Assembly: GCF_963676685.1 (NCBI RefSeq)
Contig: NC_092354.1
Coordinates: 77,438,001 to 77,502,000, forward strand
Reading direction: 5' to 3'
DNA: 64,000 bases
Source of the DNA: Mytilus edulis
Lineage: Eukaryota
Both the position numbers and the translations under genes were made by a program. The stretch's first letter is position 1, and each line of letters begins with the position of its first letter. Positions 28,595 through 49,470 of this stretch are shown here, in pieces. The notes under the pieces are model-generated. The model saw only the letters and a program-made list of their open reading frames with translations, made no database searches and was not told where the DNA came from.

Positions 28595-31500
28595 ATGGAC
28601 GCAGCGTTTGCAAAACGTATAAAAAGAAATCTTGTTTTCTTCAAGGAAAACATCACTCAGTTGAGTAAAGTAATGGACAAGTTAATCGAGACGGACTCTA
28701 TACGTATGGAGGAAAAGGCGGAGATACTAGCAGAAAAAAGTCCGGACACTCAATGTCATATTTTGTTAGAATTGTTGATGAAGCGCGGTGGATTTGATTC
28801 ATTGATTGAAGCTCTGAAAATATCTGGAAACGGTCACGTGGCTGACAAAATATTGAAAACTGATGTTTGCTGTCGAAAAGGTGAGAAAATCAAGAAATAT
28901 TTAAAGCATTTTGGATTTGGTTACTACGATATGACTCTGTTTAGTCTTCAAAGATTCTAACAAAAATATTTATAAAATTCCACATCATTTTGGTCTCGGT
29001 GGATAGTTGTTTCAGTGATAATCAAGCCACTAGTTCTGATAATATATTATTGGCTATCAAAACTAAATGCCTAGTACATCTTTATTTCTCTGTTTAGTTC
29101 TCGAAGATCTTAACAAAAACATGTGTACAAATCCATGTCGTTTTGGACTATGTGGGATAGTTGTCTCGTTGACAATCATATCTCAATCTTTTTATATATC
29201 AATAGCTATCAAAAACTGGAAATATTGTGAAGTTTGTGGTCTCTCCTTTGTCATCAAAGATCATTATACGACTTGGAACAAACATAACAGCGCTTGTGAC
29301 AGATCTATCATCTGTCAACACCTGTCCTAAATCAGGAACCTGTTGGTCAGTGGTTGTCGTTTGTTGATGTAGTTCATATACGTGTTTCTCGTTTCTCGTT
29401 TTTTATCAAGATTAGACCGTCGGTATTCCTGTTCGAATGGTTTTACACTAGTCGTTTGTTTTGGACCTTTATCGCTTACTGTTGAGTGTGAGTTAAGGCT
29501 CCTTGTTCAAGGTTGTACTTAAACATATACTGGCTTACTTTTTACAGGAGTTTTACTACGTAACTGTTCAAGTTAATGTATTAATTTCATAATAAAATTG
29601 AGAATGGAAATGGGGAATGTGTCAAAGAGACAACAACCCGACCAAATAAAAAACAACAGCAGAGGGTCACCAACAGGTCTTCAATGTAGCGAGAAATTCC
29701 CGCACCCGGAGGTGTCCTTCAGCTGGCCCCTAAACAAATATATACTAGTCCAGTGATAATGAACGCCATACTAATTTCCAAATTGTAGACAAGAAACTAA
29801 AATTAAAATAATACAAGACTAACAAAGGCCAGAGGCTCCTGACTTGGGACAGGCGCAAAAATGCGGCGGGGTTAAACATGTTTGTGAGATCTCAACCCTC
29901 CCCCTATACCTCTAACCAATGTAGAAAAGTAAACGTATAACAATACGCACATTAAAATTCAGTTCAAGAGAAGTCCGAGTCTGATGTCAGAAGATGTAAC
30001 CAAAGAAAATAAACAAAATGACAATAATACACAAATAACAACAGACTACTAGCAGTTAACTGACATGCCAGCTCCAGACTTTAATTGAACTGACTGAAAG
30101 ATTATGATTTCATCATATGAACATCAGGCACAATCCTTCCCGTTAGGGGTTTAGTATCATACCATCATAACATATATGAGAAGCATTTTGGATTTACACT
30201 AGTCGTTTGTAAGTCGGTTATATTTTTTTTTAATTTTACTCACAACATAGACAATAGAAAATACAAAACATCAAATAAAATAAATAAACAACAAGACAAA
30301 TCCTAACATATTGCAAGACTATAATGGTTTATTGTGATTCGTACAACTACATGTATATAGACTGAATAGTTGAGGAATGGGACCGATTGTTATTTTTTAG
30401 TACATGTTTCTCTAGTCTTTTAACAGAGACTTTTGTTTACAAGTCAAACCACTAATAAATAAATGCATTTTCGTAGTCCAATCAATACAACAGGCTACAA
30501 CAATTATATTTTAATATTCATTATCCATATTTAGTAAAATTTAATCACAAAGTGTGTATCTTTATTAGAAAAATATCCCCTTGAATGCTTTACATTAAAA
30601 AAAATTCTTAAAGTTGCACTGGGTGCCGCAAATACATTTTCATTCTTATGTTTCAGATAAAACCCAATTACAGAAAGAGGACTCATTCTTTGTGGTAAGT
30701 ATTATAATACTGTTTGTGACGGTGTGATTTAACTTGTGCAGAGTTATTTAAAAAAAAATGAGACTAAATGATACGGATCTCCTTAATTGCCAAAGATGAA
30801 ATTTAGAATATTTGTGCGCGTGACTTTAAATCTTGTGCGCACAACTTTTAATCTTGTGCGCACAACTTTTAAATCTTGTGCGCACAACTTTAAATCTTGA
30901 GCGCACAACTTTAAATCTTGAGCGCACAACTTTTCAACTTGTGCGCACAATTTTTTTTACAGGTCACCGTACGGCCTACATATGCATATTCATGATACTT
31001 CAAACCGTCGCTACATTGTACATGTACGTATATTTTGGCATTGCAAATGTCATGACTGTTAATAACATCCTAAAACTAAATTCATTGACGTTGGATGGAA
31101 TATAAGTGTTAAATACATATTTTTTTGTAATTGTGTGTTATTGGTTTTGAACTAACTGTCAGTAACTTTGAGTACCCTCAGATCTGTACTTTTTGTTTTT
31201 CTTGGGGTTTTTTTTTTTTTGTTGTTTTATGTTGTTTTTTTGGTGAAAGGAGGTATACATACACTGCCATTCATCTAATAAGTTAATCCCTTTGCATTTG
31301 ATTTTTATATTTTTTTTATGATGTACTGTTACACAGTTGTCTTATGTTAGGAGGAGGGTTGGTGACTTCAATCATGTTTAACCCTGCCACATTATGTATG
31401 AGCCTGTTCTAAGTCTAGAGCCTGTTATTAAGTTCTGCTATTTGCTATTTCTCATATTGTTTTTATATATTTTTTTCTTGTGTTGTGCCACTGTCGAAAG

Positions 31501-33361
31501 GAGGGGGTGCCTTCAAACATGTAAAACTCCCAATTCTTTTATTTGCCTGCCTAAAGTCATGAGCCTGTAGTTCAGTGGTTGTCGTTGGTTCGTGTCTGTA
31601 GAAATCATTATAACAGTCTATTAAAGAGCTTTCAACATACATATACTATGAATAAAGTTCATTTGCTTTCTGCTATCCTTTTCAAGTTTACTATACACGG
31701 CGGTCACAGAGTTTATTAGATAGAGAGGGTTGTAATGAATGTTCATAATATACAGATAAACGCTTACATTATTGAAATTTATAGAAAACAAAAAAATGGG
31801 AATTTTGGAAAGGAAAGGAGGAGCCGGGCTAGAAAAAAACAATTGTCCTGTCCCAAAAGTACCTATGACTTTTGATACCTTTTCTGAAATTCTCCAGTCA
31901 TAAAATCTTTTACAAAAATTCATCGGGTCACTAATTATATTATTTAAATAGAGAATTATACAATAAATATATCAATGACCGTGGATTGATTAGTAAACTG
32001 AGAATTGATAGTAAAAAGCAAATACACTTTATTTATAGTAATGAATGTTCATATTGAAATAAATAGAAAACAAAAAAAATGGGAATTTTTTGGGGAAAAG
32101 AGGAGGGGTAGAAAAACAAGTGTCCTGTCCAAAAGTACCTTTGACTTTTGATACCTTTCCTGAAGTTCTCCGGTCATTAAATCTTTCACCAAAAATCATC
32201 CTACAACACTTTACATATTTTAAGTTTAAAACCGCGCTCTAAATGCCCACGGTTTCGCGGTTGTGCGGGTGTGTTCTAGTGTTATTTCTTAAACAAAGAA
32301 GCGAACATACTTTACATTAGATTGTGAATGTTTCTATACATTACAACAAGTGGTTGATTTTCAAAGCACTTTATATGCAACAACCTGAATTTTTAGTATT
32401 TCATAAGAATTGAATTTGTGCAGCTGTTTTGGAGATGCATTGCAAATGCGCGTGGAGTTATGCGTGTTTCGTTGGTATATTTAAACGCAAAACACCACAT
32501 AGTTGCTGTGTATCAATCAAATTGTTGATTTTTTTGTGTGCTCTTTTTCATAATGTAATAATAAAAACAATTTTATCTGCATTGTAGTTTGATGACCGGA
32601 AGGAAGAGATAATTCAATTAATTAAAGAGAGAGAATTGGTCAAAATGAGGTACACTGAACTTTCTACTAAGTACAAGACGATAAAATCTGATAATGAAAC
32701 CAAATCGGATGATATAAAAATTTTGAAAGAGGAAATCGATTCGTTACGGTGTCAATTGGCAGAAGTTGAAAAGAAAGCGTCAAATATAAAAGACGAACTT
32801 AAAAAGCGAGACAAAGAAATTCAAAAGGGGAAACATGTCGAGCTCAGACCGAAGTTATTTAAAGATCGAAAAGATGTTGGAATTGATGCCGTTGATGGTC
32901 CACTGGAAGAGCTTCCGAACGATGTAAGGGGTCACGTTGATTCCGAAGGACTACTTTTTCGAATGGAAGAGCAGACTACCACCATTCAATTACTGACCGA
33001 AGAGGCGACACACTACAACAATTTGATCGCGACATTAGAAGACCAAATCCAGGAACTTAAAGCAACCGTAGATGAAAAGAATAATGATATCATGACTCTT
33101 CGTAATAATGTTGGAAAACTTCAGGTGCACCTCAAAGCTGGGCGTCAAGAAAGAGAGAAGATTTCGGCAGAACTCCGCAAAGATATGGAAAAAAATATGA
33201 AAATTCACGATGAAAGATTTGATCAAATTGACGATAAAATGGAGTATGTTATCAAACTACTTACAATTAACAGAAATGCACCGAGACAATTGGAAGTCAA
33301 TCCAATCAAATCTCCCAGAAACCAGAAACAAAACAAGTACACTAAAAAGTTTGGTCGTTAG
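28595..33361 (+). CDS. CARD + coiled-coil protein, paralogue A (365 aa); exons 28595-28880, 30657-30694, 32588-33361
   Basis: CARD-like exon (RNLVFFKENITQLSKVMDKLIE...LLELLMKRGGFDSLIEALKISGNGHVA). Donor GTGAGA. 38-nt micro-exon DKTQLQKEDSFFV. Heptad-rich last exon. Phases 1 then 0 are consistent. Confidence 0.85.
29587..30183 (-). mobile_element. Interspersed repeat, probably PLE-derived, in intron 1 of paralogue A
   Basis: Its end (aataaaattgagaatggaaatggggaatgtgtcaaagagacaacaacccgacc) matches 26500-26555 in reverse. Class is inferred. Confidence 0.5.
30810..30952. repeat. 20-21-bp tandem repeat with palindromic core TTGTGCGCACAA (about 7 units)
   Basis: aaatcttgtgcgcacaacttt repeated. Confidence 0.9.
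31617..32279 (+). mobile_element. Non-autonomous Helitron-like element with an internal duplication
   Basis: Ends in a GC-rich degenerate hairpin plus GTGTTCTAG|T. Its 3' region matches 52740-52847. 31780-31925 is duplicated at ~32060-32200. The 5' end is uncertain. Confidence 0.65.
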
Positions 33362-33871
33362 ACATAATGGACCACATAATCGAGGGTCTAGATGGATGGA
33401 CCCCCAAGTAATTGTTACCCGTTGATTTTTATACCACTTTTCTGTATTATATTTTATTTTAAACATTATTGTCTATTCTGTATTATTTTTGCTAATTTGT
33501 TTTTATTCTTTATGTGTTGCCCTCTTTTCTGCACCTTTTGCTCATTATTCTCTATTCTTCAAAAATCCATCCATACCTTCACCTAGAATGTTGTTTAAGG
33601 AATGACTGTAATATTTTTGTTTGTCTATGTTCAGTTTGCATCATATTACATCAAAATACGGGGCTCACTGAACAATACGCAGAGCTTGTTAATTACTTAA
33701 AAAATGAATACCACTTCTCTGATGTTATTTCGAATATATGGTTTCTATATACTTTCCCCCTGTAATAATTGTTATATTACATGTAGGTACTTCATGTAAA
33801 GTGAAGGTCACTTCTAGTCTCTTTTGATACGTTTATGTAATATGTATGCATATATAAAAAAAACAACATAC

Positions 33872-35345
33872 AAACAAATGGAAGTGTTTAACGACCTTGA
33901 CTGCCTATGCAGCCCTCGCACGGTCGCGGTAAAAAAACATACTATATAATACTAAACATTAACATAGTTTCGAACAAGATACTAATAAAGAGCTGATGTT
34001 TTACTAGTTTCTATGTACTTTTCCAAGTGCAAAAATGGCTTCTTTCGATTACTCGAGGTCGTTTACGGGAGATATTTATCAATTTGTCAACCAACAGTTT
34101 GCAAAAAAAATAACATGGCTTTATCATGTACCATGTTCGTGAAATAATCAATTTACCTTAAATTGAATCATTTCAGGGACAATAACTCCTAAAAGATTTC
34201 ATTGGATTGTTTTAAACCAATTGTATCATATCTTCAGTCCAATGAGGAAAGCATTTAGTTCTTTGTAAATATATCTCTAAGATTGTCAGACGAGATCTCG
34301 GAACATTGAAAAGTCAAAACATACAACATGACCTTGACCTATTACCCTGACCTCAAATTCATTTTTATTAAGTTCACCAGGATTTCATATACACACACCT
34401 AAAGTATGTTTTACTTACCATTCATGTGATATTTGACATATAACTTTTGTCAAATTCAGAAGGGGAAATAACTGTAGTATGGAGTCTACGAATTGATTCC
34501 GTTAAAATTTGACAATTTTTTCCTAGGATATAACGAGCAATTAAGTTAAATAAATTTGGCGCTTTCTTTCACGGTTACGGAAGAGATATCAGAACAATGA
34601 AAAGTCAAAATTTAGAACTTGACCTTGGACCTTGACCTCAAATTTATTTTTATGAACCCATGACCTCAAATCCGTGTACCTTAGGTATGTATTACTTACC
34701 ATTCATGTGATACATTAACATATCAATTATGCCAAATTCAAAAGGGGAAATAACTGTAATACGGAGTCTACGAGTTGATTCGGTTAAATTTTACATATCA
34801 TCCTCAAGATATATGACGAGCTATTTAGTAAAATAATTTTGTCGTTTTATTTTACGGTTACGGAGGAGATATCAGAACAATGAATAGTCAAGATCTAAAC
34901 ATGACCTTGAACTTTGACCTTGACCTCAAATTTGTTTTAATATGAACCCAGGACTTAAAAGACACGAACATTAGGTCTGTATCAAATACCATTCATGTTA
35001 AACATTGACATATCATTTATGTCAAATTAAAAAAGGGAAATAACTGTCATATGGAGTCGACGAATTGATTTTGTAAAATAACTTTTTCGTTTTCTGGTAC
35101 GGTTATGAAGGATATCTCAACACAAAGTAAATAACTGTTTAGGGAGATACCTCTTTCAATATAAAGTCTAAGACTAAACAGGGTCAGTCCCAAAAACGCA
35201 ATAACTGTTTGATATCATATGCAAAAAAAAATCTAAGAGCCATCTTGCAAAACCACAAAACAGGAAACAAATTTGACGGAAGAAGAAAAAAAAATAATCC
35301 GAACAAAAACAATAAGTCTCTCCCCAAAATAGTGGAAAGACTTAA
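33872..35345. mobile_element. Helentron/HINE-like element with an internal ~285-bp tandem array
   Basis: Units containing tgaccttgacct and ggggaaataactgt at ~34330, 34620 and 34900. Terminal hairpin taagtct..cc...gg..agactta. Confidence 0.65.
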
Positions 35346-35867
35346 CAATACAGAAATAAAGGAGCCGTTTCCAGACGTTCATTTTTACATAACGATATTT
35401 ATTCATCATCTACATATTGATATTTATATCATATATATATATCACGCATGCACTGATAATGTAAAGTTCATACACACATGTACATACACGAACTATTGTT
35501 TTATTTCATTTAGTTGTCTGTCCTTCCTTGATAATTTGTCAATTTTTTTTGTTGTAGTTTTCTGTTTGTCTTTAACTGTTTGTTTTGTTGTAGAATTTTG
35601 ATTATTTATTTATTAAAGTTTAGTTTTATATTAACATTATTATTTTTTTTTAAATTGTTTTGTTTTTGTTATAGGTAGTTCATGTTTGGCTCGTTCAAAC
35701 CAAATATGTCAAGTGTGGATTTTTTTCTTCTAGATTTCATGTTTGTGTAAACTGATCTGATGAATTAAAACTGAATTAAACTGAGAAAAAGTTTAATGTA
35801 AAGTTTGTGAATGGACGACCATGTAAACAAAACACAGCAATTATTTCCCTCATTATTCTCAACATAA

Positions 35868-36140
35868 GGTGGTACCCAAAACTTTCACTTAAATTAATTT
35901 GGCGCGTTTAATTTTCATAAAACTTTGACAAATTATTTACTTTGGCCCTTTAACAAAAATATAAAAAAATCAAAAAATTTGAACCAAGCGTTTTATCAGA
36001 AAAATAACACTGGTTATATAGCAGTTTGACAAACACTAATTTTGATCATTGTGAAGCTTTATATTGCCTTCACAAGGCAACGTAATTAAAACGTTTAGCT
36101 GATATTACAGAGTTATCTCCCTGTAGTGTTAGGTATCACC
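35868..36140. mobile_element. MITE with GGTGGTACC/GGTACCACC termini and TTAA-like flanks (Kolobok-like); other copies at 53576-53848 and partial 41671-41718
   Basis: TIRs plus high similarity among the copies. Superfamily is inferred from TTAA. Confidence 0.75.
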
Positions 36141-38108
36141 ATAAACTGCGTTGATTTTGCTATTTGTTTTTCTATTCGTTCGTAGGGGACCTATATTCGC
36201 CTATGTCTTCTTTATTTGGCCACTGGTGGATCGTTGTCTAATTTGCAATCACGCCACTTTTCCTTATTTCTATGTTAATTGTATTTCCTTTTAAATTAAT
36301 ATTTCTTGGAACCCATGATGTAATTGACATGTATTACGCATGCGTAGTACAGTTAAATTGACATATTGTTGGTATGTACATGTTGGTTGTGATTGTAGTT
36401 TTGGCAACATCTTGTCACAATTACAGTGTTGATATGTAAATCGGGAGAAGAATCTAAAGGTTATTGTTTGTTAGATGCATTGTACATTATGATTGTCCAT
36501 TTTTTTTACTAAATTCCTTAAACATTATTGTCAAAAATTTACTTACTTTCTCCCAGTACTCACATGCACCCCTCCCCATTTAGACATACTGGGGAATAGA
36601 AATATGGTTAATATGCACTACAGGTTTTTTACCGACCGCAGTAAAACCTTTTTCTAATTAAGGTGTACCGTACTACGTTTGGTGGTGCAGAATGTATGCA
36701 AGTATATATATGTACGCATCCGGTCCGATCAACATAGGGGCGTTAAACATGATGCCTCGTGTTGTTGATAGAGTTCCACGCTATGTGTGATTACCATGCA
36801 ACGAATCTTTGAGGGGATCGTAGGAGGGCCTATTCAATTTACCCTTATTTTCCAGTAGCAGTCTAAATTTCACCGAACTTTATCCATGATGTCCTCTATA
36901 GAACAGGACCTGTTTATTGAATTCATTGTTAAATAATTCTCGTCCTGAATATGCATGAAATGTGGACGTTAAGCAACCAACAATCCACCAATCAATCCTT
37001 TGTAATCTTGAAATAAGGTTTGGTTCAATCATTTGTAATCTGTGGAGGATTTTCAGTAACATTTGTGAAAAGAAAACATGGGATGTACAAATTCCACATA
37101 AAAAAAGAAAAAAGAACAAAAATATTGCACTGTGAATGCAGAATGCAGTACGAATTTAAGTATTTACAAGTTTGAGCTTTCTAAAAAGCTGAGGACTGCT
37201 ACGCTCTGTCATAATTTAAGGGTTTACTGATAGGTGAAATTAAAAATTGTTGTATTTAAGATGTTGTTTAAAACTGGCATGATATCTCTCTTTATCTAGA
37301 GATATAGGAAGATGTGGTGTGAGTGTCAATGAGACATCTCCATCCAAATAACAATTTATAAAAGTAAACCATTATAGGTCAATGTACGGTCTTCAACAAA
37401 GAGCCTTGGCTCACACCGAACATTAAGCTATAAAGGACTCCAAACTTACAAGTGTAAAACTATTCAAACGGGAAAACCAACGGTCTAATATGTTCATTAT
37501 AATCATAATTTTCCGATAAACACCCTGCTGTTAATATACAAATACTATTTTACAATTTGAAGCAAATTGTATACTATAATAACCCAACTTAAATACTTCT
37601 ACCAGTAAAATGTTCGTGCACACATCTAATTTACTTTCTTTTTTCTTTCTAATCTGTTCATCTCAAACCTTTTCAATACTTATAATTGTATTCAAAATTA
37701 GTTATTTCGACATAAGTATGACAAGATTACAAACAAATAAAGTAAATAATGAATAATTAAAAATATAATTACATTTAAGGACAAAACACGGTACAATTGA
37801 AAGAAAAAAATCACAAAAGAAAATAACAGTTATATGTTATTTACAAACTGGACAACATTCAGTTCCTTTATCAATATTCTCATTCTTATTGTTATCTAGC
37901 TAATGAAAAAGGATGTTTGCCAAATTTGACAACAAAACAGTCTTAAGTGCTAAAATACATATGTCCACGATTAGTTTAGGTTTTAATTATTATAGAACGT
38001 AGTTTCATATAATTTGGAGTCGAAGTTTCGAAACTCTTTGTTTACTTTAGTTAAGGTTTTAATTTTTGTAGAACATAGTTTGAATCGAAGTGAGATTTGT
38101 TCTTTAAA

Positions 38109-41100
38109 ATGGATCCATGTTTGTCCAAGAAAATAACTAAAAATTGTGAATTTATCGAAAATAATCTCGTCCGCTTGTCTAAGGTTGTAAACAAGTTAAT
38201 GGAGGATGACGTCCTAACACTTGTGGACAAGACAAACATTCTCTCGGCACCATCAAAGGAGACTCAGATTAATATCTTACTGGAGAAACTTATCAATGTC
38301 GGCGGGACAGCTTTCACCTCTTTTGTGGAATCGTTAAATGCAACCGGAAATGAACGTATAGCAGATCAGATACTTCAGACAGATTCGTCGGGTAAGATAA
38401 AAAGTATACATATTAAAAGCAGAAATCTTTTGATACATGTATATGTGCCTGTGGGAAGGGGGCAACATTCGAGAAAAGCGAGACAAACGTCAGTGAAAAT
38501 TAAAATGTTAAACATTTGGGAAAAAAATGATAACCTTTCAACTTTCAACAATTTGAAGAATTTTTGTGTCAACAAAATGAAATAATACTTTCACGAAGCT
38601 AAGAAACACAAATACACAAATGAACTTATGATATGGGCTTTGCTTATTAATTGCGTCCGTACGGTGACCTATAGTTGTTAATTTCTTTGTCATTTTAGTC
38701 TCTTGTGGAGAGTTGTCTCATTGGCAACCATACCACGTCTTCTTTTTTATATTAGTTCTAGGGAGGTCATTGTTTTTTTATCCGTGTTGAAGACCGAACT
38801 GTGACTTTGAGACAAAGAACATCATTAATAAAAGAGTAACTGTTGTTCCTTTGCTTTTTTGTGGTTTTTCTTTACTGTGCGTGTACCGAATAGGAATCAT
38901 GAACGAATACGCATTCTTTTTTTTTTTATTATAATAGATTATTAAATCTTGTTATACATGTATATTAAAGAAGTGTCAAACTTATAGCGTATTTTCTGTC
39001 AATCTTCCTCCACAAAAATGAACCGAATACAAAAAAAAGCTTACTAGGACAATATCCGTGGGATACAAGACAACGTCAGTGAAAATCGCAACACAAAATA
39101 ATACCATGAAAGAGTCATATTATTATTATATCTAAATTACTTGAGATTATTTTAATTTTATGATAAAGTCAACACGACAGAAACGTACAACAAACACATT
39201 TTTTTCTCTTTTTCCTGCAATAAAAATGAGATGGCGTATTGATATTAAATTTGATATTATCATTATTGTGCGTTGGTGAATACAGATATATGTTTAAATG
39301 CCTGTACATAATAAGAAATTGGACATAAAATAATCTGAGAAATATTTAATATATCCAAACACCGTTCTTAAGATTATGTATTTCGTATTGCAGAAGATAC
39401 AGCCATGTCTCGAGAAGAGACCTCGTTCAGTGATAGCACAGTGAGTTAAACTATTTCAAAACAAGTTAGATTCTTCGTAAAAAGCTATAAACCATTTAAG
39501 TACATGTACAATGGAACAATAATATGAATAACGTAAATAAAAGACTCATTGGCAGTCAAACCACACATCTTCTTACTATATATATATTGGTCCCCTTTAT
39601 AGATTGCTGTTCGGTATGGCGTGTATTGAAAGCTGTATTTTGATATGAAATGGTTAACTTTTATACATATTGTAACTTGGATTGAGAGTTGTCTCTTTGA
39701 CACTCATACCACATCTTATTTCTAACTGGGAAATTTCAATACTGTTGTAAGCTTTTCGACAAGAAATAAATCATTGTTTGAATACGAAACAGCTACGTCA
39801 TTTGTGGTGCGTTCTAATAAATTAAACAACACATGAATACTCTTTATTCACAGGCACTTGTTTCTGTCAATATGGGGTTTACTATCCATACCTGTACTAA
39901 GTGTCTGTGTCTTTATTACAGTCTGGTGACTTCTGAGAAAATGAAATCATGTCTTTTTGTTATATACATTTAAGCATGTGCGTTCTAATAAATTACACAA
40001 AATCTTTATTTCAGTCTGGTGACTTCCGAGAAGATGAAATCCTCCATCTTTATAAAGAAAAACAGATGTATAAAGTGAAGCTGTCCGACATGACAACTAA
40101 TTACAAACAGCTCCAGTCAGAACTGACCGTCAAGGAACATAAAATAGAATGCCTGAACAAAGAGATACACAAACTACAGATTGACCTTGAGGAGAACAGG
40201 AAGGGGTTGTTAGAGAACAGTTTCGACGCATTGGAAGGCGACATTTTCCGAAGGATGAATACTGGTGCAAATACCAGGGAACTGATGAGAAAGGTTTTTA
40301 GAATATATCATTTATCGCGTCACGTGTATCAAATATTGCTAGTTTTTAAGAAACGAAATGCATTGAAATAATTGATAAGGATACATTTTATTCACTACCA
40401 TATATGTACTTCCGGTTTTGATTTTCAGATAATACTTAGTAGATACAATACTGACATGAAATGTCTAGTTTCTATACTATTAAACGAGAAGACCTCATTT
40501 TGTGTGTCACTTCTCCTTCCTTCCACAATAAATTAATCATCATGCCTCTGTGTTCTTTACTAGGTAACATGCATAGTCGCATTTGTCATCCATTCTTATG
40601 ATTATTCAGATTTAGTTATTTTGGGAGAAAAACGACAAAATAGGTGTCCGGATATTGTTTCCGTTATCAAACTGACTTTTAGTCATAATTAGGACTTCCG
40701 GTTTTGAACATACACAAGAACAACCAATCGTATGATAGATTACAAAAATGAAAAATAAATAAGCCAATCAGAGCGTTCTCCATATGGTTTTTAGATCGCA
40801 AGAACCACAACTATTATACCTCCTTAGAGTCAATTATGTTTTCGCGTTTATCAACCTGTAAAATACGATTATACTACTATAATATACAGAGACTCGCTGT
40901 ATTCTGTCTACTTTTTTCTGAAAAGTTTACTAACTAAGGGGTCATACCAGTTGCATATATATATATTGAAATAAGTAAAACATGTGGAAAAAAGAATGTG
41001 TCCATATTATACGGATGCCAAGTCACCAATATCATTTACTATATGTTTAGTGGACCGTGAAATGGGGTAAAATCTCTAATTTGGCATTAAAATTAGAACG

Positions 41101-43283
41101 ATCATATCACAGGGAACATATTTACTAAGTTTCGAGTTGGTTGGACTTCAACTTCATCAATAACTAACTCCACAAAAACTTTAACCTGAAGCGGGAAAGA
41201 CGGACGAACGAACGAACGGACGAACAGACTAGAAAACATAATTCCCATAAATGGGGCATACACATTTATTGTTGGAAGTGAAAACTTTAGCCTGAATCCG
41301 GACAGAAGGACGGACAAACGAACGAACAGACGAATAGACTAGAAAACATAATGGGGCATAAAAATTATTGTTGAAAGTGAAAGTAGGATAGAGATTAGAG
41401 GGAGGCGGGACTTATTCGGGACGTCGGGATCGGGTGTTTTTAAGCTCGGGATTTCGGGATTGATCTTTACGGGATGCGAGAATATTTTTTTTTAATTTCG
41501 GGATGTCGGGATATACGAGATAAAAATCCTACCATTTGCATGTTAATAGGGCTCTCAAAAGGAAAAGCACTGATGGATTGTCCTAGAAGCACATTCTATT
41601 AGAATAATTATTATAATGGTCTATAAGCAGTTTCATTTATTTCAATACATGTTTGAAGCGGTGCAATTTTTTTAGCTGATTTTACAGAGTTATCTCCCTG
41701 TAGTGTTAGGTACCACCTTAATATGACGTTGTGTCTTTTTTTTTTTTTTTTATCAAATTTACAATCATAAAGACATTATTCTTTCGGTCGTATTCACAAG
41801 TAATATGGGCCAGAAAATATAAAATCAATGACAGAAATACGCTGTCATATCCCATGAATTAAAGTCCCAAATTAACATATGATACTGGCCTATATAATAA
41901 ACCACTTCCATCTTCAGTTTTAAAAGTTCTGTTAAAGTATTCACATCATTTGATAATCAATGTTATACTCTTTCGACCAGTGTTTTGTTGCCTTATTCTG
42001 GCATTGATACGTAAGTTAAGTTTAAAATTGAACGTGTGTTTCAGGCTCGTGACCTGCAGTTAGCGTTAGACGAAAAGGAAGAAAAAGCTAACAACTTGCA
42101 AAAGGATTTAGAATACTACAGAAGCCAGCTCGACATAGTAGAGAAACAAGTAAAGAAACAGAAAGACGACAACAGCGAAAAAGATACTAGAATAATGATA
42201 CTTAGAAATCAGGTATGGTTACTAAAAACAAACAAGGGAAAGTACAAATAACAAACAACATAGAGTCAACATTCATTAAACTTGTAGAACGATAACATCG
42301 AGGAGGCCCCCCCCCCCCCTCATCGAGGACATATTTTTGAAGATCTAAAGACGTTTACACCTACGTTAATTTGGTTTTTAGTGAAAAGTGTTCTTCTTGT
42401 TTCTCCTTATTTTAAATTGACAGAATACACAAACTAAAACAATCTCAGTCTATTGAGTATTTGTCTTTAATTCATTGACCAATCAAAACACTTGATTTGA
42501 ATTTTAATGAGTACTATAATGTAATGAGCATTTGACATGACACCGCACCATTTATACTTTAGTTTTCGCTATGATTGTTATCAAAGGAGATTTAAATTGA
42601 CTTTAAAGTGATAGGTTTTCTAGGCATTTAAAAATTAAAAAAAAAAAACTACATGAATTAAGGATTGCAACATAATGTAATCAATGAGGTAGTTTATTTT
42701 AATTTTAAAAGTTAAATGCATGCACACAGAACAAGAAAAATCACTTTTGCAACTGATTTGTCTACTATCAAACTATTTTTGTTTATCTCAACTTAGTCGA
42801 CCTATACTGTAAAATCTACATATGCGATCACCTATTGCGTTTATTTCCAATTTGTTCCAGTCCTGATATCCATTAAAATTTGGAGCTACATGTAGACTTA
42901 AGAAAAAAATAAATAATCAATCAAATCCATAAACGTGTATTTGCGTATTATTACAGGTAGGGAAACTCCAGAACTATCTACAAGCCAGTAAACAGAACTT
43001 ATCACGGATCAATAACGAACAAAAACGCATCATGGACCAATGGAATAAAGAACAGCTGGAACGCTTTAAAGAGATAGAAAACAAGATGGAGGGCGGAAAG
43101 AAAGACAACTCCAAGCGATTTAATACACTGGAGGACAAGATAGATATCTTGATAAAGATGATGTCAGCGCAGGGACCTGCATTGCCCAATCTAATTAAGA
43201 GTGTTGAAAAGAGCAAACCTCCTGTGAAAAGTCATAAAGATGCGTATGGAAGAAAAGGAAAATCAAATCGATATAAGAACTAA
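38109..43283 (+). CDS. CARD + coiled-coil protein, paralogue B (367 aa); exons 38109-38391, 39394-39440, 40015-40293, 42045-42212, 42957-43283
   Basis: CARD exon (KNCEFIENNLVRLSKVVNKLME...LLEKLINVGGTAFTSFVESLNATGNERIA). 47-nt micro-exon EDTAMSREETSFSDST. Three phase-0 coiled-coil exons, all GT-AG and in frame. Confidence 0.85.
40471..41670 (+). mobile_element. 3'-truncated Helitron-like element (same family as 50518-52847) in intron 3 of paralogue B
   Basis: Shared 5' end TCTATACTATTAAACGAGAAGACCTC and colinear internal sequence. Confidence 0.8.
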
Positions 43284-44044
43284 ATCAAATGTTGAAGTAT
43301 ATGAACTTCAAGTCTTTAAACCGTTAGGGATTTGTAAAGATGGTTTTCTTTTACTGAATTATTTCTGAATTGTTAGTTGTCTTCTCTTCCCTTTTACAGC
43401 TACTAATTCGTGTCCTCAACAATTAAAATAATTATGACAATTACATGTATGTTATGTGCCGGCAGTTTTTTTTATCAAAACATTGCTAGTTTTGTTGATT
43501 TTTATTACAGTCTTTAAACAACACATGAATATTATGTCGTTTTTCACTAATTATAAAGATTAACTTACACATCTTTATTGTTTTTTGTTGTTTTATTATC
43601 ATTTCATTTAATAAAACAACAAAAAACAATAAAGATGTGTCAGCGCAGGGACCTGCATTGCCCAATCTAATTAAGAGTGTTGAAAAGAGCAAACCTCCTG
43701 TGAAAAGTCATAAAGATGCGTATGGAAGAAAAGGAAAATCAAATCGATATAAGAACTAAATCAAATGTTGAAGTATATGAACTTCAAGTCTTTAAACCGT
43801 TAGGGATTTGTAAAGATGGTTTTCTTTTACTGAATTATTTCTGAATTGTTAGTTGTCTTCTCTTCCCTTTTACAGCTACTAATTCGTGTCCTCAACAATT
43901 AAAATAATTATGACAATTACATGTATGTTATGTGCCGGCAGTTTTTTTTTATCAAAACATTGCTAGTTTTGTTGATTTTTATTACAGTCTTTAAACAACA
44001 CATGAATATTATGTCGTTTTTCACTAATTATAAAGATTAACTTA
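43162..44044. repeat. ~405-bp direct duplication of the end of the CDS and 3'UTR of paralogue B, with a perfect 32-bp hairpin at the junction
   Basis: 43162-43566 is repeated at 43638-44043. Inverted repeat arms are at 43567-43598 and 43609-43640. Confidence 0.92.
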
Positions 44045-44589
44045 TTGTACACGCGTCAGACTATACAATACAATTACACGCGCTTGAATATACAATCATT
44101 GTAAATAGTGAACACCAGTTGAAAACTCAAGATTGTCATTAATTTCCTTTCATCTTCAATCAATATGCATAAACATGATAAATATCGTTTAATGAGGCAA
44201 TACACAAATAAAAAGATGAAAACATTCACATTTCAATTTTCTTTTCCTCCTGTTTGATTTCGGTTCTTTGTATTTCACAATTTGTGTCAATATTTTCAGG
44301 ACAATGATGCACAAATAATTCATTTTGCGAGCTTAATATATATTGCACGAAAAGAGTTTTAAAAAACAAATTATAAGATAAATAATATGTTCTAAAACAC
44401 AAGGAAAAGTAATCTCAGAATACAATAATTAATCGTAATACTGGCTGTTATTCATTATAGATGATAAAATATTATGTAAATAATGTTTCATTGTTTCTAT
44501 CAATTTTAACTTTCTTGTCACTAAAATTATTTTCTTTTGCATATTCTTTTAATATTTATTGCAATAATAAATTTTAATTAAAAAAAAAT

Positions 44590-44730
44590 GTTGTCTTGTC
44601 GCTAAATAGTTTTTTGTCGCTTGTTGTCGCTAAAATAATTCTTGTTGTCGCTTCTTGTCGTTTGTTGACGCTTGTTGTCGCTAAAATTCTTGTTGTCGCT
44701 AAAATTCTTGTTGTCGCTAATTAGTGAGAC
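44590..44730. repeat. TTGTTGTCGCT(AAAA) short tandem repeats
   Basis: Directly visible. Confidence 0.8.
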
Positions 44731-45134
44731 CGCATTTAAGTGTTATCTAACGTCAGCCGAAAATTGGCGGTTTTGGCTATATTTCTCCTCTTCGAATACC
44801 AACGTTTTTAGATGGTATTGATTCACTTTTATATTTCAATTTCAAATACTAGTTGCTTTTATTATATTTAACACTTGTAGCCTGAATATTTGTATAGAAA
44901 TATTAAAACAGAAAAAATCAAATACTGAAGAACTTTATACACGACGAATCACTTACTCGTGTTTAAAAATTCGCTGTTGTTTGCGCACGTGTGTGTACGT
45001 GCATGATTTTGGAAGATAACTCCCAATTCTTTAGATTTTTACGTATAAATGATTTTGATATCTGAAAAAGAATCTTTTTCATATGATAAACTTTATAGTT
45101 GCTTTGTTTGCCTGATCATCAGATACATTAAAAG

Positions 45135-45258
45135 TAAAGGTTCACGACTATTTGCTTGTAATTTACAATTTGTAAAGCATTGATTTTTAACCTTTACTAA
45201 AGGTTCACGACTATTTGCTTGTAATTTACAATTTTTAAAGCATTGATTTTTAACCTTT
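45135..45258. repeat. ~63-bp tandem duplication
   Basis: taaaggttcacgactatttgcttgtaatttacaattt occurs twice. Confidence 0.85.
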
Positions 45259-45746
45259 TGTATCTGAATATGTGTTTGTTTGGAAATTTTTTCTCCTGAT
45301 TTAAAAAATAACAACAACTAATTTTCATGATCTTTTGGAACCATGTAAAAGCATATTCCCCTTCATTTTCAATGGAAACTAACCATTTTCAGCATGTCCA
45401 AAGCCAGAAATCTCAAGCCTTTGTTAGTCTTGTGTATGGTACTTTAAGTTTTGGTTCATCTGTATATTTCGAAGATAGTGTAGCATTAATTTCCCTGACT
45501 ATTGCAATATACAGTATTGTTCGAAGCCAGTTGTATTAAAGAAATTAGAAGACCTTTATACGTCATATCTTAAGTTACATACATAAATATGCATTATCTT
45601 ATATAGTTTTGTCTGGCATATATCCTTGTTCTCATTTGTATAGTTCAGCGACTGAAAATTAAAGGTGTAAGCTTTCGTGCATTAATCGATGTCCATATAC
45701 TAATATAAGCATATATGTTAGTATTTAGCATATGAAATGTGATAAC

Positions 45747-45902
45747 ATAGGCGGATCCAGGGGGCTGGGGGGCCCGGCCCCCTCCCTTTCGTGGGCAAAA
45801 TTTGGTTGATTATATAGGGAATCATTGAAGCATGACTTGAGCATCCCCCCTCTTAGGTCAGTCAGCCGGCCCTCCCTTAGGAAAAGTTCTGGATCCGCCA
45901 TT
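45747..45902. mobile_element. GC-rich MITE with GGCGGATCCAG TIRs; inverted copy at 57845-58012
   Basis: ataggcggatccag...ctggatccgccat, with a shared internal tatatagggaatca.tgaagcatga. Confidence 0.75.
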
Positions 45903-46088
45903 ATCATAATGTAAATAAATATAGTATACCCTGCCTATCATATAAGTACTGTTATTAACAAAATATGACCTTGATATACAATACTTATGATCTTAGTATA
46001 CTATAAAAGTTTGTGCAATTAACCATGCATTCTGTTGTCTTCGGTTTCAACTACGACTTATATGTCGTCCGACCACCAGTAATCCAAA

Positions 46089-49000
46089 ATGGAACCCATA
46101 GAATCCAAACGGATTACAAAGAATTTATTATTTATCAAAGACAATATCACCCAACTTGAGAAAATCATGGATAAACTTATAGAGGATGACTGCCTCGGAA
46201 TGGATGAAAGAGCTGATATTTTGTCGGCCAAGAGGACAGATAAACAATGCCACAAACTACTTGATATTTTACTAAAACGAGGCGGTAATTCTTACTCGTC
46301 ATTCATAGAGGCTTTAGAAGTATCGGGGAATCATCACGTGGCTACGCGAATACAACATAAAGACTTTCAAAAAGGTAAATTGAACATATTTCACCTTTTC
46401 TACCCCCTAACTAATCCTGTTTACTAACATATCGAAAGTAAACTATTTCGATGTCTCAAGCCAGTAAAAAATGAAATTTGTCAATTCCAGAATGTCAGAG
46501 TTGTCACACACAATGTTTCATTTCAGATTCCTTTTGTCTATGAATTTTACGGATGTCGAAAAGAATTTTTTACTATCTTTTGTCATAAAGTCAGATTTGC
46601 AAATTCCAGAATATTAGATTAGGCCCGCACAATGTTTAGTTTACTCAATTTGAATTGGTATTGGCATAATTTAAATGGTTCATCTTATCTGTAAATGACC
46701 AGTAAATAAACCTATGCGTTAGTCCTAAAACTAATTCTAATATGACGTGCTTCCTTCGTTTGTAAACAACACCGTGATAAAAAAAATAAGTAAATACGAA
46801 ATGTACCAGAAGTAAGCTATTATCTGATGTTTGTTGTACAGTAGCATGTACGGGTGTACGTTTGTATTTGCTTATATCCACGCTATTTGACTGTGGTGGA
46901 TACTTGTCTCAATGGCAGTCATAGACTCATACCACATAATATCTATATTTATATGCATTATATTAATTTGCGTTATCTTTTATGATTTCTACAAGTTTTT
47001 TTTAACGTTAGAACAATAATATATAATATATAATGATAATGACTGTTATTCTTTCATGTCATATTTTTATCTGACTGCATGTTCTCTTTTTTTTTTAACC
47101 AGATGGATATTACATAAATGTCTCTTTCTTCAAGATTTATTTGCTGAAATGCTGTTGCGCTTTTGGGTATAAGCATTGAGCCTATAATTGGAACTATACA
47201 TTTGTCAAACTTTGATTTTTATCAATAGCAATATAATAGTCTTTGATAAAAATGAAAATTGTAAAGTTACAATATTTATGCAGCTATCTTTGTATTTTGA
47301 ATTTTAAACTTATAATAATACTAATGGGACCTGTCAATTGAACAATTAAAAAGTAAAATAATTATGTATATTGGATCACGCGTGCGTAACTCCATTGTCT
47401 GGAGATAATAGCTAAAAGTCAGTTTTCAATGTAAATGAATTTAAATATACCGTTTGTTTACACAATAATTGTAAAATTACCCACCGACAACACTATAAAT
47501 GGATTTACAATGGGTTTATTTGATTTTGCATTGATGCATATCTACTTGCAGACGACACAAGCTTTCTGCACGTGAAAGAAGACACATTTACAGTTAATGG
47601 AAAGGTACAGATGAAGTTATATGGAAATTTTGAATTAAAATATACAGTAAAGCCACATATAGATACGCTCTAAATTTGGCTGCTATTAGGGCACTAGACT
47701 TGAAATTCAATAATTGAATTCAAATCAACGTCGAAATCAAAAACAAATACGAGCATATTTGGATTATACAAGAAAGCATCTCTTTAACATGAAGTTGTCA
47801 CGGAAGTATAGAAAGATAAATGAGACTGTTAAGTAAAGTCAACAGCCTGAAATATAAATAATCTGATTGAAATACGAACGTGTAGTTATCAAATTGAATG
47901 ATTGCATGTACCCACGAGAATAATTTTCTAATTATATATAAGAAGATGTGGTATGCGTGACTATGAGGCAACTCTCCATCCAAGTCATAATTTTTAAAAG
48001 TAAACCACTTTACATTATATAGGTCAAAGTAGTCTTCAGCACGGAGCCTTGGCTCACACCGATCAACAAGCTATAAAGAGCACCCCAAATCTATTTTCAC
48101 ACGTGTAGAAACAAAAAAACTTTTAAGAAGTATCCCTCAATGATAAAAAAAAAACCCAAATATTGTATAGGTGGCGGCATTAAAAAAACTGCATTACCAA
48201 ATCAAGAACAAATTAACTATAATAACGTGGATATCAATCTACATGGACATCAAAAGTCATTTGAATAAGCAAACCCGTACTACTGGTGCTCCTATAAAAT
48301 ATGTTATATATGGAGATAAGGCATCACACAAAAACGAATTGCAAATAAATCCATATTTAATCACACGATATAATCACACTCGTTAAAAACTGTCGGTCAT
48401 GTACATATTTTAACATTAAAACTTGACAAGAATTTGAAAAACATTTTTTACCAGGACAAAGGAATATAGGAAGAAGATGCGGTAGTATTACAAATGAGAT
48501 AACTATCCACAAGAGACCAAATGACACAGAAACTAACTTGGTCCCCATTCCGACCGAACCTGCTCGCGTTATCATACATCCAATACTGCCAAGAATACGC
48601 CTACTTTTAGTAATGGTTTTACTGCTTTATCAGTAGCTTGAGTCCAAAGTTGACATTTCTAAACGTATAACCTTGTCTACCTGTTATACATATTTTTAGA
48701 TTGAGTTTGAAGAAGCTGAGGTGATCCAGCTGTACGAGGAAAAAGAAATGTATTTAGAAAGAGTCAAAGAACTCGAAGTCAGCTGTACACTCTTACAGAA
48801 TGAAAATTATCTGAAAGAACACAAAATTGACAAGCTGAATCAGGACGTCTGGCTTTTAAAGCAAAACGCCCAACAGAAGTACGATGAGATAGACAATGTC
48901 GACGAGACATGCGTAGAACATCTCCGGAAGTTAGATGAAGTTGAAGCTCAGTGTAAAACGCTAGAGGAGGAAAATGCTCATTTACAAATAGTCCAAAGAA

Positions 49001-49470
49001 GCTTACAGGAAACTATCAGCGATAAAGAAGTTACGATGAAAAATCTGAATCAAGAACGAGAGTTTTATAAAAAGCAGATGAACATTCTTCAAGCTGATCT
49101 GAGGCAGCTACAGAATGACAATGCAGAAAAAGACGCCAAGATCCAAACACTAAACGAGCAAATACGACAACTAAAAATTGATCTTCAAAATACCCGTCAA
49201 GCCATGGACAAAATGGCGACTGACTCACGCGTTGCTATGGAACAATTGAAAACCGACCACAGCAATCGATTCAATCAGTTAGACAATAAGCTCGATTGCG
49301 TCTTAAAAATGTTGAAAACATCAAAGATGGTTGACGGAAACGTTTTAAAATCAGCAGATGTAAACAAGAATACAAGGAAACAAAGCATAGGGTCACACAA
49401 AACCGAAAATCGTCCATGTACTAATGCTTCCAGAAATAAACCGGGTATAAACCGTAATCAAAAGATTTGA
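46089..49470 (+). CDS. CARD + coiled-coil protein, paralogue C (369 aa); exons 46089-46374, 47552-47604, 48700-49470
   Basis: CARD exon (KNLLFIKDNITQLEKIMDKLIE...LLDILLKRGGNSYSSFIEALEVSGNHHVA). 53-nt micro-exon DDTSFLHVKEDTFTVNGK. 256-aa coiled-coil exon in frame. Confidence 0.88.

Follow-up and report, generated by a model that had tools for sequence, protein, structure and literature searches.

A tandem trio of CARD–coiled-coil genes in Mytilus edulis as one cluster of a larger bivalve family with a CARD9-like layout and Apaf-1-like CARDs

The stretch of DNA examined here (the window) comprises 64,000 nucleotides of the genome of Mytilus edulis (contig NC_092354.1) and contains three intact genes (A, B, and C), all on the + strand, which, read directly from the sequence, encode proteins of 365, 367, and 369 aa, respectively. 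They share one build: a CARD exon followed by a phase-1 intron, a micro-exon of 38, 47, or 53 nt, a coil region of ca. 257 aa, and a basic tail. All 11 exons of the three genes are open, and every intron is bordered by GT and AG. The core of the micro-exon reads KEDS in A, REET in B, and KEDT in C, and the coil starts with EIIQLIKER, EILHLYKEK, and EVIQLYEEK, respectively. The earlier note on this DNA had described such a trio of co-oriented genes, with the phase-1 intron, the micro-exon of 38–53 nt with its core motif, the coil-start motif, and the Lys/Arg-rich tail, and each of these features was indeed found. It had also given a last region of 257, 257, and 256 aa; these lengths agree, but only in A and C is the coil encoded by a single exon, since that of B spans three. 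A reading of the micro-exon motif as TRAF-binding or LC3-interacting, judged by eye, was dropped because it is not kept across the three paralogues.

Exon 1 of gene A (28595..28880, + strand) holds the start codon, preceded by an in-frame TGA at 28580, and the CARD (95 codons and 1 nt, ending at a phase-1 donor). It is followed by the micro-exon (30657..30694, +; 38 nt), which encodes the linker DKTQLQKEDSFFV, and by the last exon (32588..33361, +; 257 codons and the stop), which encodes a coil with a Gly/Pro-containing break and the basic tail. Transcript support was checked for this gene only. Contigs from four runs of four different studies join 28880 to 30657 and 30694 to 32588 exactly as modelled, with both joints in one contig per run; these spliced contigs begin at 28459–28565, cover the last exon wholly, and extend into the 3′ UTR past 33500, whereas the unique bins of the introns have zero depth. 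The transcript contains no further coding exons, and the joining of CARD and coil exons in mRNA without added domains is seen for gene A. Compared with its orthologue in M. californianus (P0007), the CARD of gene A is 92% and the last exon 78% identical, which makes the CARD the best conserved part.

Gene B consists of five exons on the + strand: the CARD exon (38109..38391; 94 codons and 1 nt), the micro-exon (39394..39440; 47 nt with AG/GT borders, encoding EDTAMSREETSFSDST), exon 3 with the first coil segment (40015..40293; 93 codons), exon 4 with further coil (42045..42212; 56 codons), and exon 5 with the end of the coil, the basic tail, and the stop (42957..43283; 108 codons). They tile on residues 1–94, 96–110, 110–202, 204–258, and 259–363 of P0164, a transcript-like protein from another sample that is 63–76% identical and provides the support for this gene. 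Logan contigs of 1.2–1.4 kb also carry B-like ORFs of 364 aa; their size alone suggests that they are cDNA. Identity to the nearest known relative is 63% for the B CARD and 67–76% for the B coil, and this lower conservation of the CARD could, judging from the sequences, reflect relaxed constraint. Upstream of exon 3, the segment 39910..39948 (+) forms a direct repeat with 40003–40041 (92% identity); it comprises a copy of the acceptor and of the first 27 nt of exon 3, lies 93 nt upstream of the real acceptor, and contains an in-frame TGA.

The CARD exon of gene C (46089..46374, +; 95 codons and 1 nt), its micro-exon (47552..47604, +; 53 nt, encoding DDTSFLHVKEDTFTVNGK), and its last exon (48700..49470, +; 256 codons and the stop, with an unbroken coiled coil of ca. 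200 residues and the basic tail) correspond to residues 1–95, 97–113, and 114–369 of the NCBI protein P0001. This model, deposited as “uncharacterized protein MCAP_0864-like,” is identical to gene C and constitutes its support. Exon by exon, P0001 (gene C), P0007, and P0164 are covered without gaps; these three database proteins were used for the whole-protein analyses, and the exons themselves for the genome searches. No literature on the CARD-coil family was found in open-access papers by name, accession, or topic. The proteins of this set, put forward before as a candidate undescribed system, are uncharacterised but have already been deposited, under wrong names.

The earlier view of a lineage-specific system of three genes was not supported as it stood, and the trio is not a closed set. 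At least 13 genes with the CARD–coil–basic tail layout, arranged in several tandem clusters of which the trio is one, occur in the M. edulis genome, and the family is conserved in other bivalves, since the same layout is present in Mytilus spp., scallops, oysters, and a unionid (a freshwater mussel). The further members were reached by searching the genome with the CARD exon; whole-genome searches with the coil exons matched only the paralogues inside the window. Databases give the bivalve relatives either no name or a wrong one borrowed from coiled-coil proteins (KIF15-A, Smc-like, rootletin-like, golgin-like, and CCDC30-like). Eight further top CARD hits (P0047, P0048, P0085, P0090, P0092, P0068, P0032, and P0008) were rejected as members because they are multi-CARD proteins, CARD-caspases, or have other layouts. 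A CARD tree groups all CARD-coil proteins into a single clade (96/98), separate from the CARD-caspases. A, B, and C are most probably old tandem paralogues within this larger bivalve family.

The exon 1 translations of A, B, and C match the Pfam CARD profile (PF00619) with 27.0, 26.4, and 39.9 bits, respectively, all above the cut-off of 23.9. The CARDs of A and C are 56% identical, those of A and B 43%, and those of C and B 40%, close to the earlier manual estimate of ca. 55% for A and C with B more distant. The AF2 model of the gene C CARD (pLDDT 89.7) is a six-helix bundle with a broken first helix (3–11/13–19, 23–32, 38–45, 50–64, 68–78, and 82–90). Its top fold match in the PDB (Foldseek) is the CARD of Apaf-1 (TM 0.87–0.89, rmsd ca. 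1.1 Å), ahead of CARMA1 (0.80) and CARD9 (0.72). Pfam and the predicted fold thus agree that the N-terminal domains are CARDs. When a profile built from 15 CARDs of the family was run against the PDB, the second CARD of MDA5 came first (3.5e-10), with Apaf-1 at 3e-8, CED-3 at 8.6e-7, and ICEBERG and CARD8 at ca. 1e-4; CARD9 appears at ca. rank 57, where only part of the domain is matched (E = 0.28), and neither CARD11 nor BCL10 is among the best 60 matches. The single sequence of the oyster member P0190 gave no CARD match in the PDB, so that a profile is needed. Pfam detected CARD as the sole family in the exons and in P0001, with no protease, NACHT, Death, or MAGUK domain, and the polar, basic tails lack a hydrophobic anchor; the absence of a protease, NACHT, transmembrane, or MAGUK domain asserted before is borne out.

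In the full model of P0001 (gene C), the CARD helices (3–90) are followed by a disordered segment (93–112; the micro-exon part is predicted with pLDDT < 50), a single helix (115–318), and a disordered end (317–369). The low confidence of the linker (pLDDT < 50) and the pTM of 0.29 imply that a fixed contact between CARD and coil is not predicted, although a monomer model cannot exclude such a contact. When the stalk of gene C (113–322) was modelled as a homodimer, the median score of three runs was 0.44 (0.00, 0.44, and 0.46) and that of the best control 0.00; the pass rests on the median, the test is weakly calibrated for eukaryotes, and two long amphipathic helices readily end up side by side in a model. 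The predicted dimer is parallel and in register, with i-to-i contacts at a 3–4 spacing from 116 to 314 and a partner pLDDT of at least 59, in keeping with the self-association expected for the coil. The coils of A and C are 26% identical, and the Gly/Pro-containing breaks in the stalks of A and B imply that their geometry may differ from that of C. In each of the three proteins, the last 40 residues contain 10 K/R versus 2 D/E and are polar, without a hydrophobic stretch.

Judging from these models, the proteins are most likely bivalent CARD adaptors or decoys, and we consider it probable that they are small cytosolic bivalent adaptors in which an Apaf-1/CED-3-like CARD is carried by a tether on a paired stalk that ends in a basic tail. 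The computed part comprises the gene structures, the transcription and splicing of gene A, the fold of the CARD, the long helix and its predicted pairing, the disorder of linker and tail, and the distribution of the family; which partners are bound, in which direction they are affected, and what the tail does are our inference. Each protein would consist of a six-helix CARD, an acidic, Ser/Thr-rich disordered tether of ca. 20 residues supplied by the micro-exon, a stalk of ca. 200 residues, and a disordered polybasic tail of ca. 50 residues. Two copies would pair through the stalk, parallel and in register, placing two tethered CARDs at one end of a rod of ca. 30 nm and two basic tails at the opposite end. 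The paired CARDs may then bind CARD-bearing partners through homotypic contacts, with the expanded mussel CARD-caspases, or CARD adaptors or receptors, as candidates; bivalves carry many CARD-caspases and other CARD proteins. Binding could either join two partner molecules, leading to activation by induced proximity or to filament seeding, or cap them. The basic tail may bring the complex to an anionic surface, such as that of a membrane or nucleic acid, or serve as a nuclear signal. The paralogues have diverged strongly (26% identity between the coils of A and C, 40–56% among the CARDs), which may confer paralogue-specific pairing and partner preference. A constitutive dimer would need extra control against permanent signalling. 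It is possible, though rather unlikely in this full form, that the proteins are bivalve-own CARD platforms, independent of CARD9. In that reading, constitutive two-stranded coiled-coil rods would display Apaf-1-like CARDs in pairs, and the expanded CARD-caspases or RLR/MAVS-like CARD partners would be activated through induced proximity; each paralogue would have its own trigger or partner code, and the basic tail would determine where assembly takes place.

Another explanation for this domain order, an N-terminal CARD (1–92), a linker of 20 residues, and a long coiled coil (helix 115–318), is that the proteins are divergent CARD-CC members (CARD9/CARD10/CARD11/CARD14) that would nucleate BCL10 filaments within a CARD-CC/BCL10/paracaspase complex of the mussel, and BCL10, CARD-CC, and type 1 paracaspase have indeed been reported in molluscs (PMC5978004). 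The mussel and CARD-CC proteins also share the lack of an enzymatic domain and a long dimerising coiled coil (predicted here), and both presumably cluster CARDs. A whole-protein language-model feature search even ranked CARD9 clusters first (0.85, a grade that the tool treats as a lead only), but this lead was not upheld: the CARD alone retrieves only generic CARD clusters in the same search, CARD9 reaches only a partial match at 0.28 in the 15-CARD profile, where MDA5 CARD2, Apaf-1, and CED-3 stand at 1e-10 to 1e-6, and the fold comparison places Apaf-1 above CARMA1 and CARD9. A profile of the pan-bivalve subgroup and a single-sequence PDB search give the same outcome, Apaf-1/CED-3/MDA5-like and not CARD9/CARD11/BCL10-like, which agrees with the earlier observation that the CARDs are not of the latter type; moreover, none of the members is named CARD9-like in any source. 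Invertebrates have been described with a single ancestral CARD-CC that co-occurs with BCL10 and type 1 paracaspase (Staal et al., 2018; PMC5978004), in contrast to the at least 13 copies, many of them tandem paralogues, in the mussel. CARD-CC proteins have an autoinhibitory packing of the CARD against the start of the coil; in the monomer model of P0001 a disordered tether of 20 residues lies between CARD and coil, and packing is not predicted. The mussel stalk is also shorter and followed by a polybasic tail. As the CARDs are closest to those of MDA5, Apaf-1, and CED-3, with CARD9 marginal and CARD11 and BCL10 outside the best 60, we regard the layout as CARD9-like and the proteins, on sequence grounds, as not demonstrably CARD-CC members; a divergent CARD-CC origin seems improbable.

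The absence of an effector domain (by Pfam) is shared with vertebrate CARD-only proteins (ICEBERG, COP, and INCA) and ARC/NOL3, and the profile also matched ICEBERG and CARD8 (ca. 1e-4). The mussel proteins might accordingly be dominant-negative decoys that use the CARD to keep initiator caspases or CARD adaptors out of productive assemblies, with avidity added by the stalk; tandem expansion with fast divergence would suit host–pathogen regulators, and the duplicated acceptor of gene B could, if used, yield a CARD-only product. However, the known decoys consist of a CARD only (ca. 90–110 aa; ca. 90–210 aa if ARC is included) and have no long coil, whereas the mussel proteins have 365–369 aa, of which ca. 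257 aa lie beyond the linker and form a conserved stalk and tail. Simple capping needs neither a conserved dimerising stalk of 200 residues nor a basic tail, and bivalency favours joining partners, so that a purely inhibitory role appears unlikely, even though the data do not separate activation from inhibition. The names KIF15-A, Smc-like, rootletin-like, golgin-like, and CCDC30-like, together with weak, below-threshold Pfam matches to coiled coils, could point to structural or trafficking proteins (golgin-, rootletin-, or kinesin-like) that use the CARD as a docking module outside death and immunity. These names stem from compositional similarity of the coil, no such Pfam family reaches the cut-off, motor, Smc head, and GRIP domains are all absent, and it is the CARD of gene A that is conserved best between species (92% versus 78%), which renders this explanation very unlikely. 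Finally, it is hard to see one or more of the trio as decaying, functionless duplicates. Gene B would be the foremost candidate, with a CARD 63% identical to its nearest relative and barely above the Pfam cut-off (26.4 versus 23.9), and a duplicated acceptor with a stop, but open frames and canonical splice sites are kept throughout the 11 exons, the lengths of 365, 367, and 369 aa are conserved, and gene A is transcribed in four studies.

As bivalent CARD adaptors, the mussel proteins would resemble Apaf-1 and the CED-4–CED-3 pair, which are among the best sequence matches and include the best fold match, in that the CARD would recruit a CARD-caspase; they differ in lacking NB-ARC and WD40 domains and would oligomerise through a two-stranded coil instead of a nucleotide-driven ring. 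CRADD/RAIDD is likewise a small adaptor, the CARD of which recruits caspase-2, but it pairs the CARD with a Death domain, whereas the mussel CARD is paired with a coiled coil and no Death domain was detected by Pfam. MDA5 provides the top profile match with its second CARD, and MAVS also combines a CARD with a disordered region and a C-terminal localisation element; unlike MAVS, RIG-I, and MDA5, however, the mussel proteins have neither a helicase nor a transmembrane anchor, their tail is basic and polar, and their middle part is a coiled coil rather than proline-rich.

Apaf-1, PIDD, and PYCARD are reported as not found in molluscs, where CRADD would be the sole activator with a CARD (Krasovec et al., 2024; PMC11463336), which leaves room for CARD-caspase activation platforms. 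The lophotrochozoan cell-death inventories (PMC11463336) treated CRADD as the sole CARD-bearing activator and did not list the CARD-coil family. This conserved, multi-copy family, expressed in the case of gene A and with Apaf-1-like CARDs on a stalk predicted to dimerise, would thus add to them, as candidates, another class of CARD platforms or regulators. It is likely a case of a CARD9-like layout that arose without CARD9-type sequence, which bears on the ease with which death-fold scaffolds are reinvented. The ORFs, of ca. 1.1 kb, encode clonable proteins for probing the control of initiator caspases and CARD hubs in molluscs.

Base-by-base reading of the three regions confirmed the description, given in the earlier note, of three neighbouring plus-strand genes encoding proteins of 365, 367, and 369 aa, each with a CARD exon, a micro-exon linker, a coiled coil, and a basic tail. 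Gene A comprises 28595–28880, 30657–30694 (a 38-nt micro-exon), and 32588–33361; gene B 38109–38391, 39394–39440 (47 nt), 40015–40293, 42045–42212, and 42957–43283; and gene C 46089–46374, 47552–47604 (53 nt), and 48700–49470. Every intron has GT..AG borders. The phase-1 intron after the CARD was indeed present in all three, phase 0 being regained via the micro-exon, which is of the proposed length (38–53 nt) and carries the expected core motif, i.e., KEDS (A), REET (B), or KEDT (C). The coil start E(I/V)(I/L)xLxxE(K/R) and the Lys/Arg-rich tail also occur as described, with 10 K/R vs. 2 D/E in the final 40 residues of each gene. The lengths noted for the last region (257, 257, and 256 aa) are correct, but in B this region is not undivided, its 257 aa being spread over three exons. 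The CARDs of A and C, estimated by eye to be ca. 55% identical with B more distant, share 56% identity, vs. 43% for A–B and 40% for C–B. A six-frame search of the whole genome with the coil exon of C retrieved the corresponding exons of A (2.3e-5) and B (7.2e-4), with no matches beyond these, and the coils of A and C (26% identity) can be aligned end to end. A, B, and C are hence products of an ancient duplication of entire genes.

The direct transcript check covered, of the three genes, gene A only, with contigs of four runs from four studies aligned to 28400–33500. Each run yielded one contig of 1031–1494 nt that starts in the 5′ UTR (28459–28565), joins 28880 to 30657 and 30694 to 32588 with the 38-nt micro-exon read through, and reaches the 3′ UTR past the stop. 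Depth was zero in the unique intron bins of gene A in the four runs, which indicates that these are RNA and that the model of A is exact. Since an in-frame TGA (28580) lies ahead of the ATG, the transcript codes for CARD, linker, coil, and tail only; the supposed joining of the CARD and coil exons, with no further domains, is thus borne out for gene A in four runs. Its last exon was present in twenty runs from seven studies. In two stretches of its introns (29590–30180 and 31136–31650), contig depth was very high in each of the four RNA runs (up to ~2e5) and loose ends were numerous; the stretches consist of SINE- or MITE-like interspersed repeats that are transcribed but do not belong to the gene A mRNA. 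A 21-nt minisatellite (TTGTGCGCACAACTTTAAATC; ~7 copies, 30812–30954) lies shortly 3′ of the micro-exon of A.

Gene C is represented in the NCBI database by P0001, “uncharacterized protein MCAP_0864-like [Mytilus edulis]” (369 aa), which matches the model of C in the earlier note letter for letter, including the micro-exon. The exons of gene B tile gap-free on the B-like protein P0164 (364 aa; 63–76% identity), with lower conservation in the CARD than in the coil. P0164 is encoded on contigs of merely 1.2–1.4 kb, and since gene B spans 5.2 kb these contigs are probably cDNA. The Mytilus californianus orthologue of A, P0007 (92% identity in the CARD, 78% in the coil), is misnamed KIF15-A, and its NCBI model holds 21 additional linker residues (96–116) between CARD and micro-exon, without counterpart in the four M. 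edulis transcript contigs, which represent either an additional or alternative micro-exon in M. californianus or a model error. The system was proposed to be undescribed; its proteins have in fact already been deposited, but they are uncharacterised and no paper on the mussel CARD-coil family was found in the open-access literature.

In gene B the acceptor of exon 3 is duplicated, together with the first 27 nt of the exon, 93 nt upstream (39910–39948 vs. 40003–40041; 92% identical), and a second short repeat (39807–39829 and 39978–40000) is located nearby; the sequence of this region suggests a local tandem duplication. A C-to-T change in the upstream copy creates an in-frame TGA, so that use of this site would give a CARD-plus-linker product of ~114 aa.

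The exon 1 translations of A, B, and C all score above the Pfam cut-off for CARD, which establishes the identity of this domain, and Pfam revealed no other family at its cut-off in any of the exons or in P0001, consistent with the claimed absence of protease, NACHT, and MAGUK domains. Exons were searched individually, and analyses at the whole-protein level relied on database proteins instead of joined exon translations. The AlphaFold2 model of P0001, obtained with a ten-member family alignment, consists of CARD helices (3–90), a disordered linker (93–112) that coincides with the micro-exon, a single continuous helix (115–318), and a disordered tail (317–369). When modelled alone (pLDDT 89.7), the CARD superposes best on that of Apaf-1 (TM 0.87–0.89, rmsd ~1.1 Å over 89 residues), with CARMA1 (TM 0.80) and CARD9 (TM 0.72) as lower matches. 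The predicted homodimer of two copies of residues 113–322 scored 0.44 (median of 0.00, 0.44, and 0.46; partner pLDDT ≥59, run agreement ≥3% of contacts), vs. 0.00 for the best of three controls; in the eukaryote calibration of this test, 17 of 29 proteins whose structures were solved as pairs of one chain attained the mark, vs. 0 of 30 solved as single chains. Predicted contacts run from residue i to residue i with unbroken 3–4 spacing from 116 to 314, indicating an in-register parallel two-stranded coiled coil, and the prediction supports, rather than demonstrates, dimerisation of the P0001 stalk. In A and B, the stalk is interrupted by Gly/Pro-containing breaks.

The CARD exon of C matched 30 places in the 1.37-Gb genome at E ≤ 1e-3, twelve of these at E ≤ 1e-9, and family membership was assigned where a same-strand coil exon with a basic end was found in the fetched DNA downstream of the CARD exon. 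A second tandem trio of ~300–315 aa CARD-coil genes is located at C4:2069586–2085264 (loci L031–L033); two of these match NCBI proteins, the third has a partial coil match only, and in at least two the CARD exon is followed directly by one coil exon, with no micro-exon. A tandem pair encoding P0014 and P0051 (366–373 aa) occurs at C1:36774763–36782681 (L034 and L035), P0014 having a small middle exon, and further loci with a downstream coil exon were found at C1:103.66 Mb, C11:60.1 Mb, C9:76.9 Mb, C2:6.99 Mb, C1:97.8 Mb, and C1:79.0 Mb. The M. edulis genome thus holds at least 13 CARD-coil genes, arranged as several local arrays, and the layout is also found in M. californianus, M. galloprovincialis, M. 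trossulus, scallops (Mizuhopecten, Pecten), oysters (Crassostrea virginica, Saccostrea), and the unionid Potamilus; the self-contained three-gene set envisaged in the earlier note is therefore not upheld. These relatives are named “uncharacterized,” “CARD domain-containing protein,” or, mistakenly, after coiled-coil proteins (KIF15-A, Smc-like, MYH9s, CCDC30-like, involucrin-like, golgin-like, rootletin-like). In a CARD tree that also took in mollusc CARD-caspases, one CARD-Death protein, and one CARD-TPR protein, all CARD-coil proteins fell in one clade (96/98), separate from these other types. Within it, A, B, C, and the gene at C11:60.1 Mb cluster with weaker support (87/60), and oyster, scallop, and unionid proteins form a pan-bivalve subgroup with two mussel genes. 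The remaining CARD matches inspected have other layouts. Among the best matches in a 1.8-billion-protein library were P0008, P0012, P0013, P0017, and P0033, with five to seven tandem CARDs akin to the family CARD; P0008 (842 aa) contains CARD repeats and almost nothing else.

The CARD-coil layout is shared with the CARD-CC family (CARD9, CARD10, CARD11, and CARD14), and a language-model feature search with the whole protein placed CARD9 clusters on top (0.85), a result graded by the tool as a lead only; with the CARD alone, generic CARD clusters were obtained. A profile of 15 family CARDs searched against all PDB sequences matched MDA5 CARD2 (3.5e-10), Apaf-1 (~3e-8), and CED-3 (8.6e-7), then ICEBERG/NLRC4/CARD8 (~1e-4), RAIDD/NOD1 (~3e-3), and caspase-9 (~0.014). 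CARD9 reached merely 0.28, covering part of the domain, and CARD11 and BCL10 were absent among the best 60 matches; a single-sequence query and a profile of the pan-bivalve subgroup gave the same pattern. Membership of CARD-CC via the CARD sequence thus failed, at 0.28 for CARD9 vs. 1e-10 to 1e-6 for MDA5, Apaf-1, and CED-3, and the profile search and the fold ranking agree with the earlier view that this CARD is not of the CARD9/CARD11 type. According to Staal et al. (2018; PMC5978004), the CARDs of CARD-CC proteins constitute a group of their own, which molluscs possess alongside BCL10 and which has a single ancestral copy in invertebrates; the mussel family, with its many copies and Apaf-1-like CARD, fits this poorly. 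On account of the failed sequence test and the copy number, we file the mussel proteins as CARD-coiled-coil-like scaffolds, which by analogy may work like such a scaffold, and not as demonstrated CARD-CC members.

As a parallel dimer, the protein would form a rod of ~30 nm, with two CARDs extending from one end on flexible 20-residue tethers and the two polybasic tails located at the opposite end. In the most likely mechanism, such a bivalent CARD module would bind CARD partners through homotypic contacts, and two partners would be either drawn together or capped. It is well established for death folds that initiator caspases are activated through induced proximity and that CARD filaments require a seed. 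Candidate partners encoded in this genome are CARD-caspases with related CARDs (P0128, P0136, P0139, P0141, and P0154) and multi-CARD proteins. Which way the effect goes, which partners take part, and what the tail contributes are matters of inference here, and a constitutive dimer needs extra control. Krasovec et al. (2024; PMC11463336) did not find Apaf-1, PIDD, or PYCARD in molluscs, where they consider CRADD the sole CARD activator; the mussel CARD-coil family, absent from their list, forms a second class of candidates. Proteins that combine a CARD with a coiled coil are already known; new here are the lineage, the type of CARD, the tail, and the expansion in tandem. The finding agrees with the expansion of death-fold genes already documented for bivalves and supplies testable candidates for a specialised question.

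The window (C11:77438001–77502000) is AT-rich (30–36% GC) and also contains minisatellites and a LINE-type retrotransposon (11601–14784) with a reverse-transcriptase ORF (RVT_1, 1.7e-23). On the minus strand, an open frame with a PAN/Apple domain (4017–4481; PAN_3 3.6e-6, PAN_1 1.1e-5) probably belongs to an unrelated gene nearby as one of its exons. A Gly/Ser/Met/Pro-rich open frame of 183 aa (25631–26182), likewise on the minus strand, has a Cys-rich end but matches no Pfam family; it could represent one exon for a secreted low-complexity protein or be open by chance.
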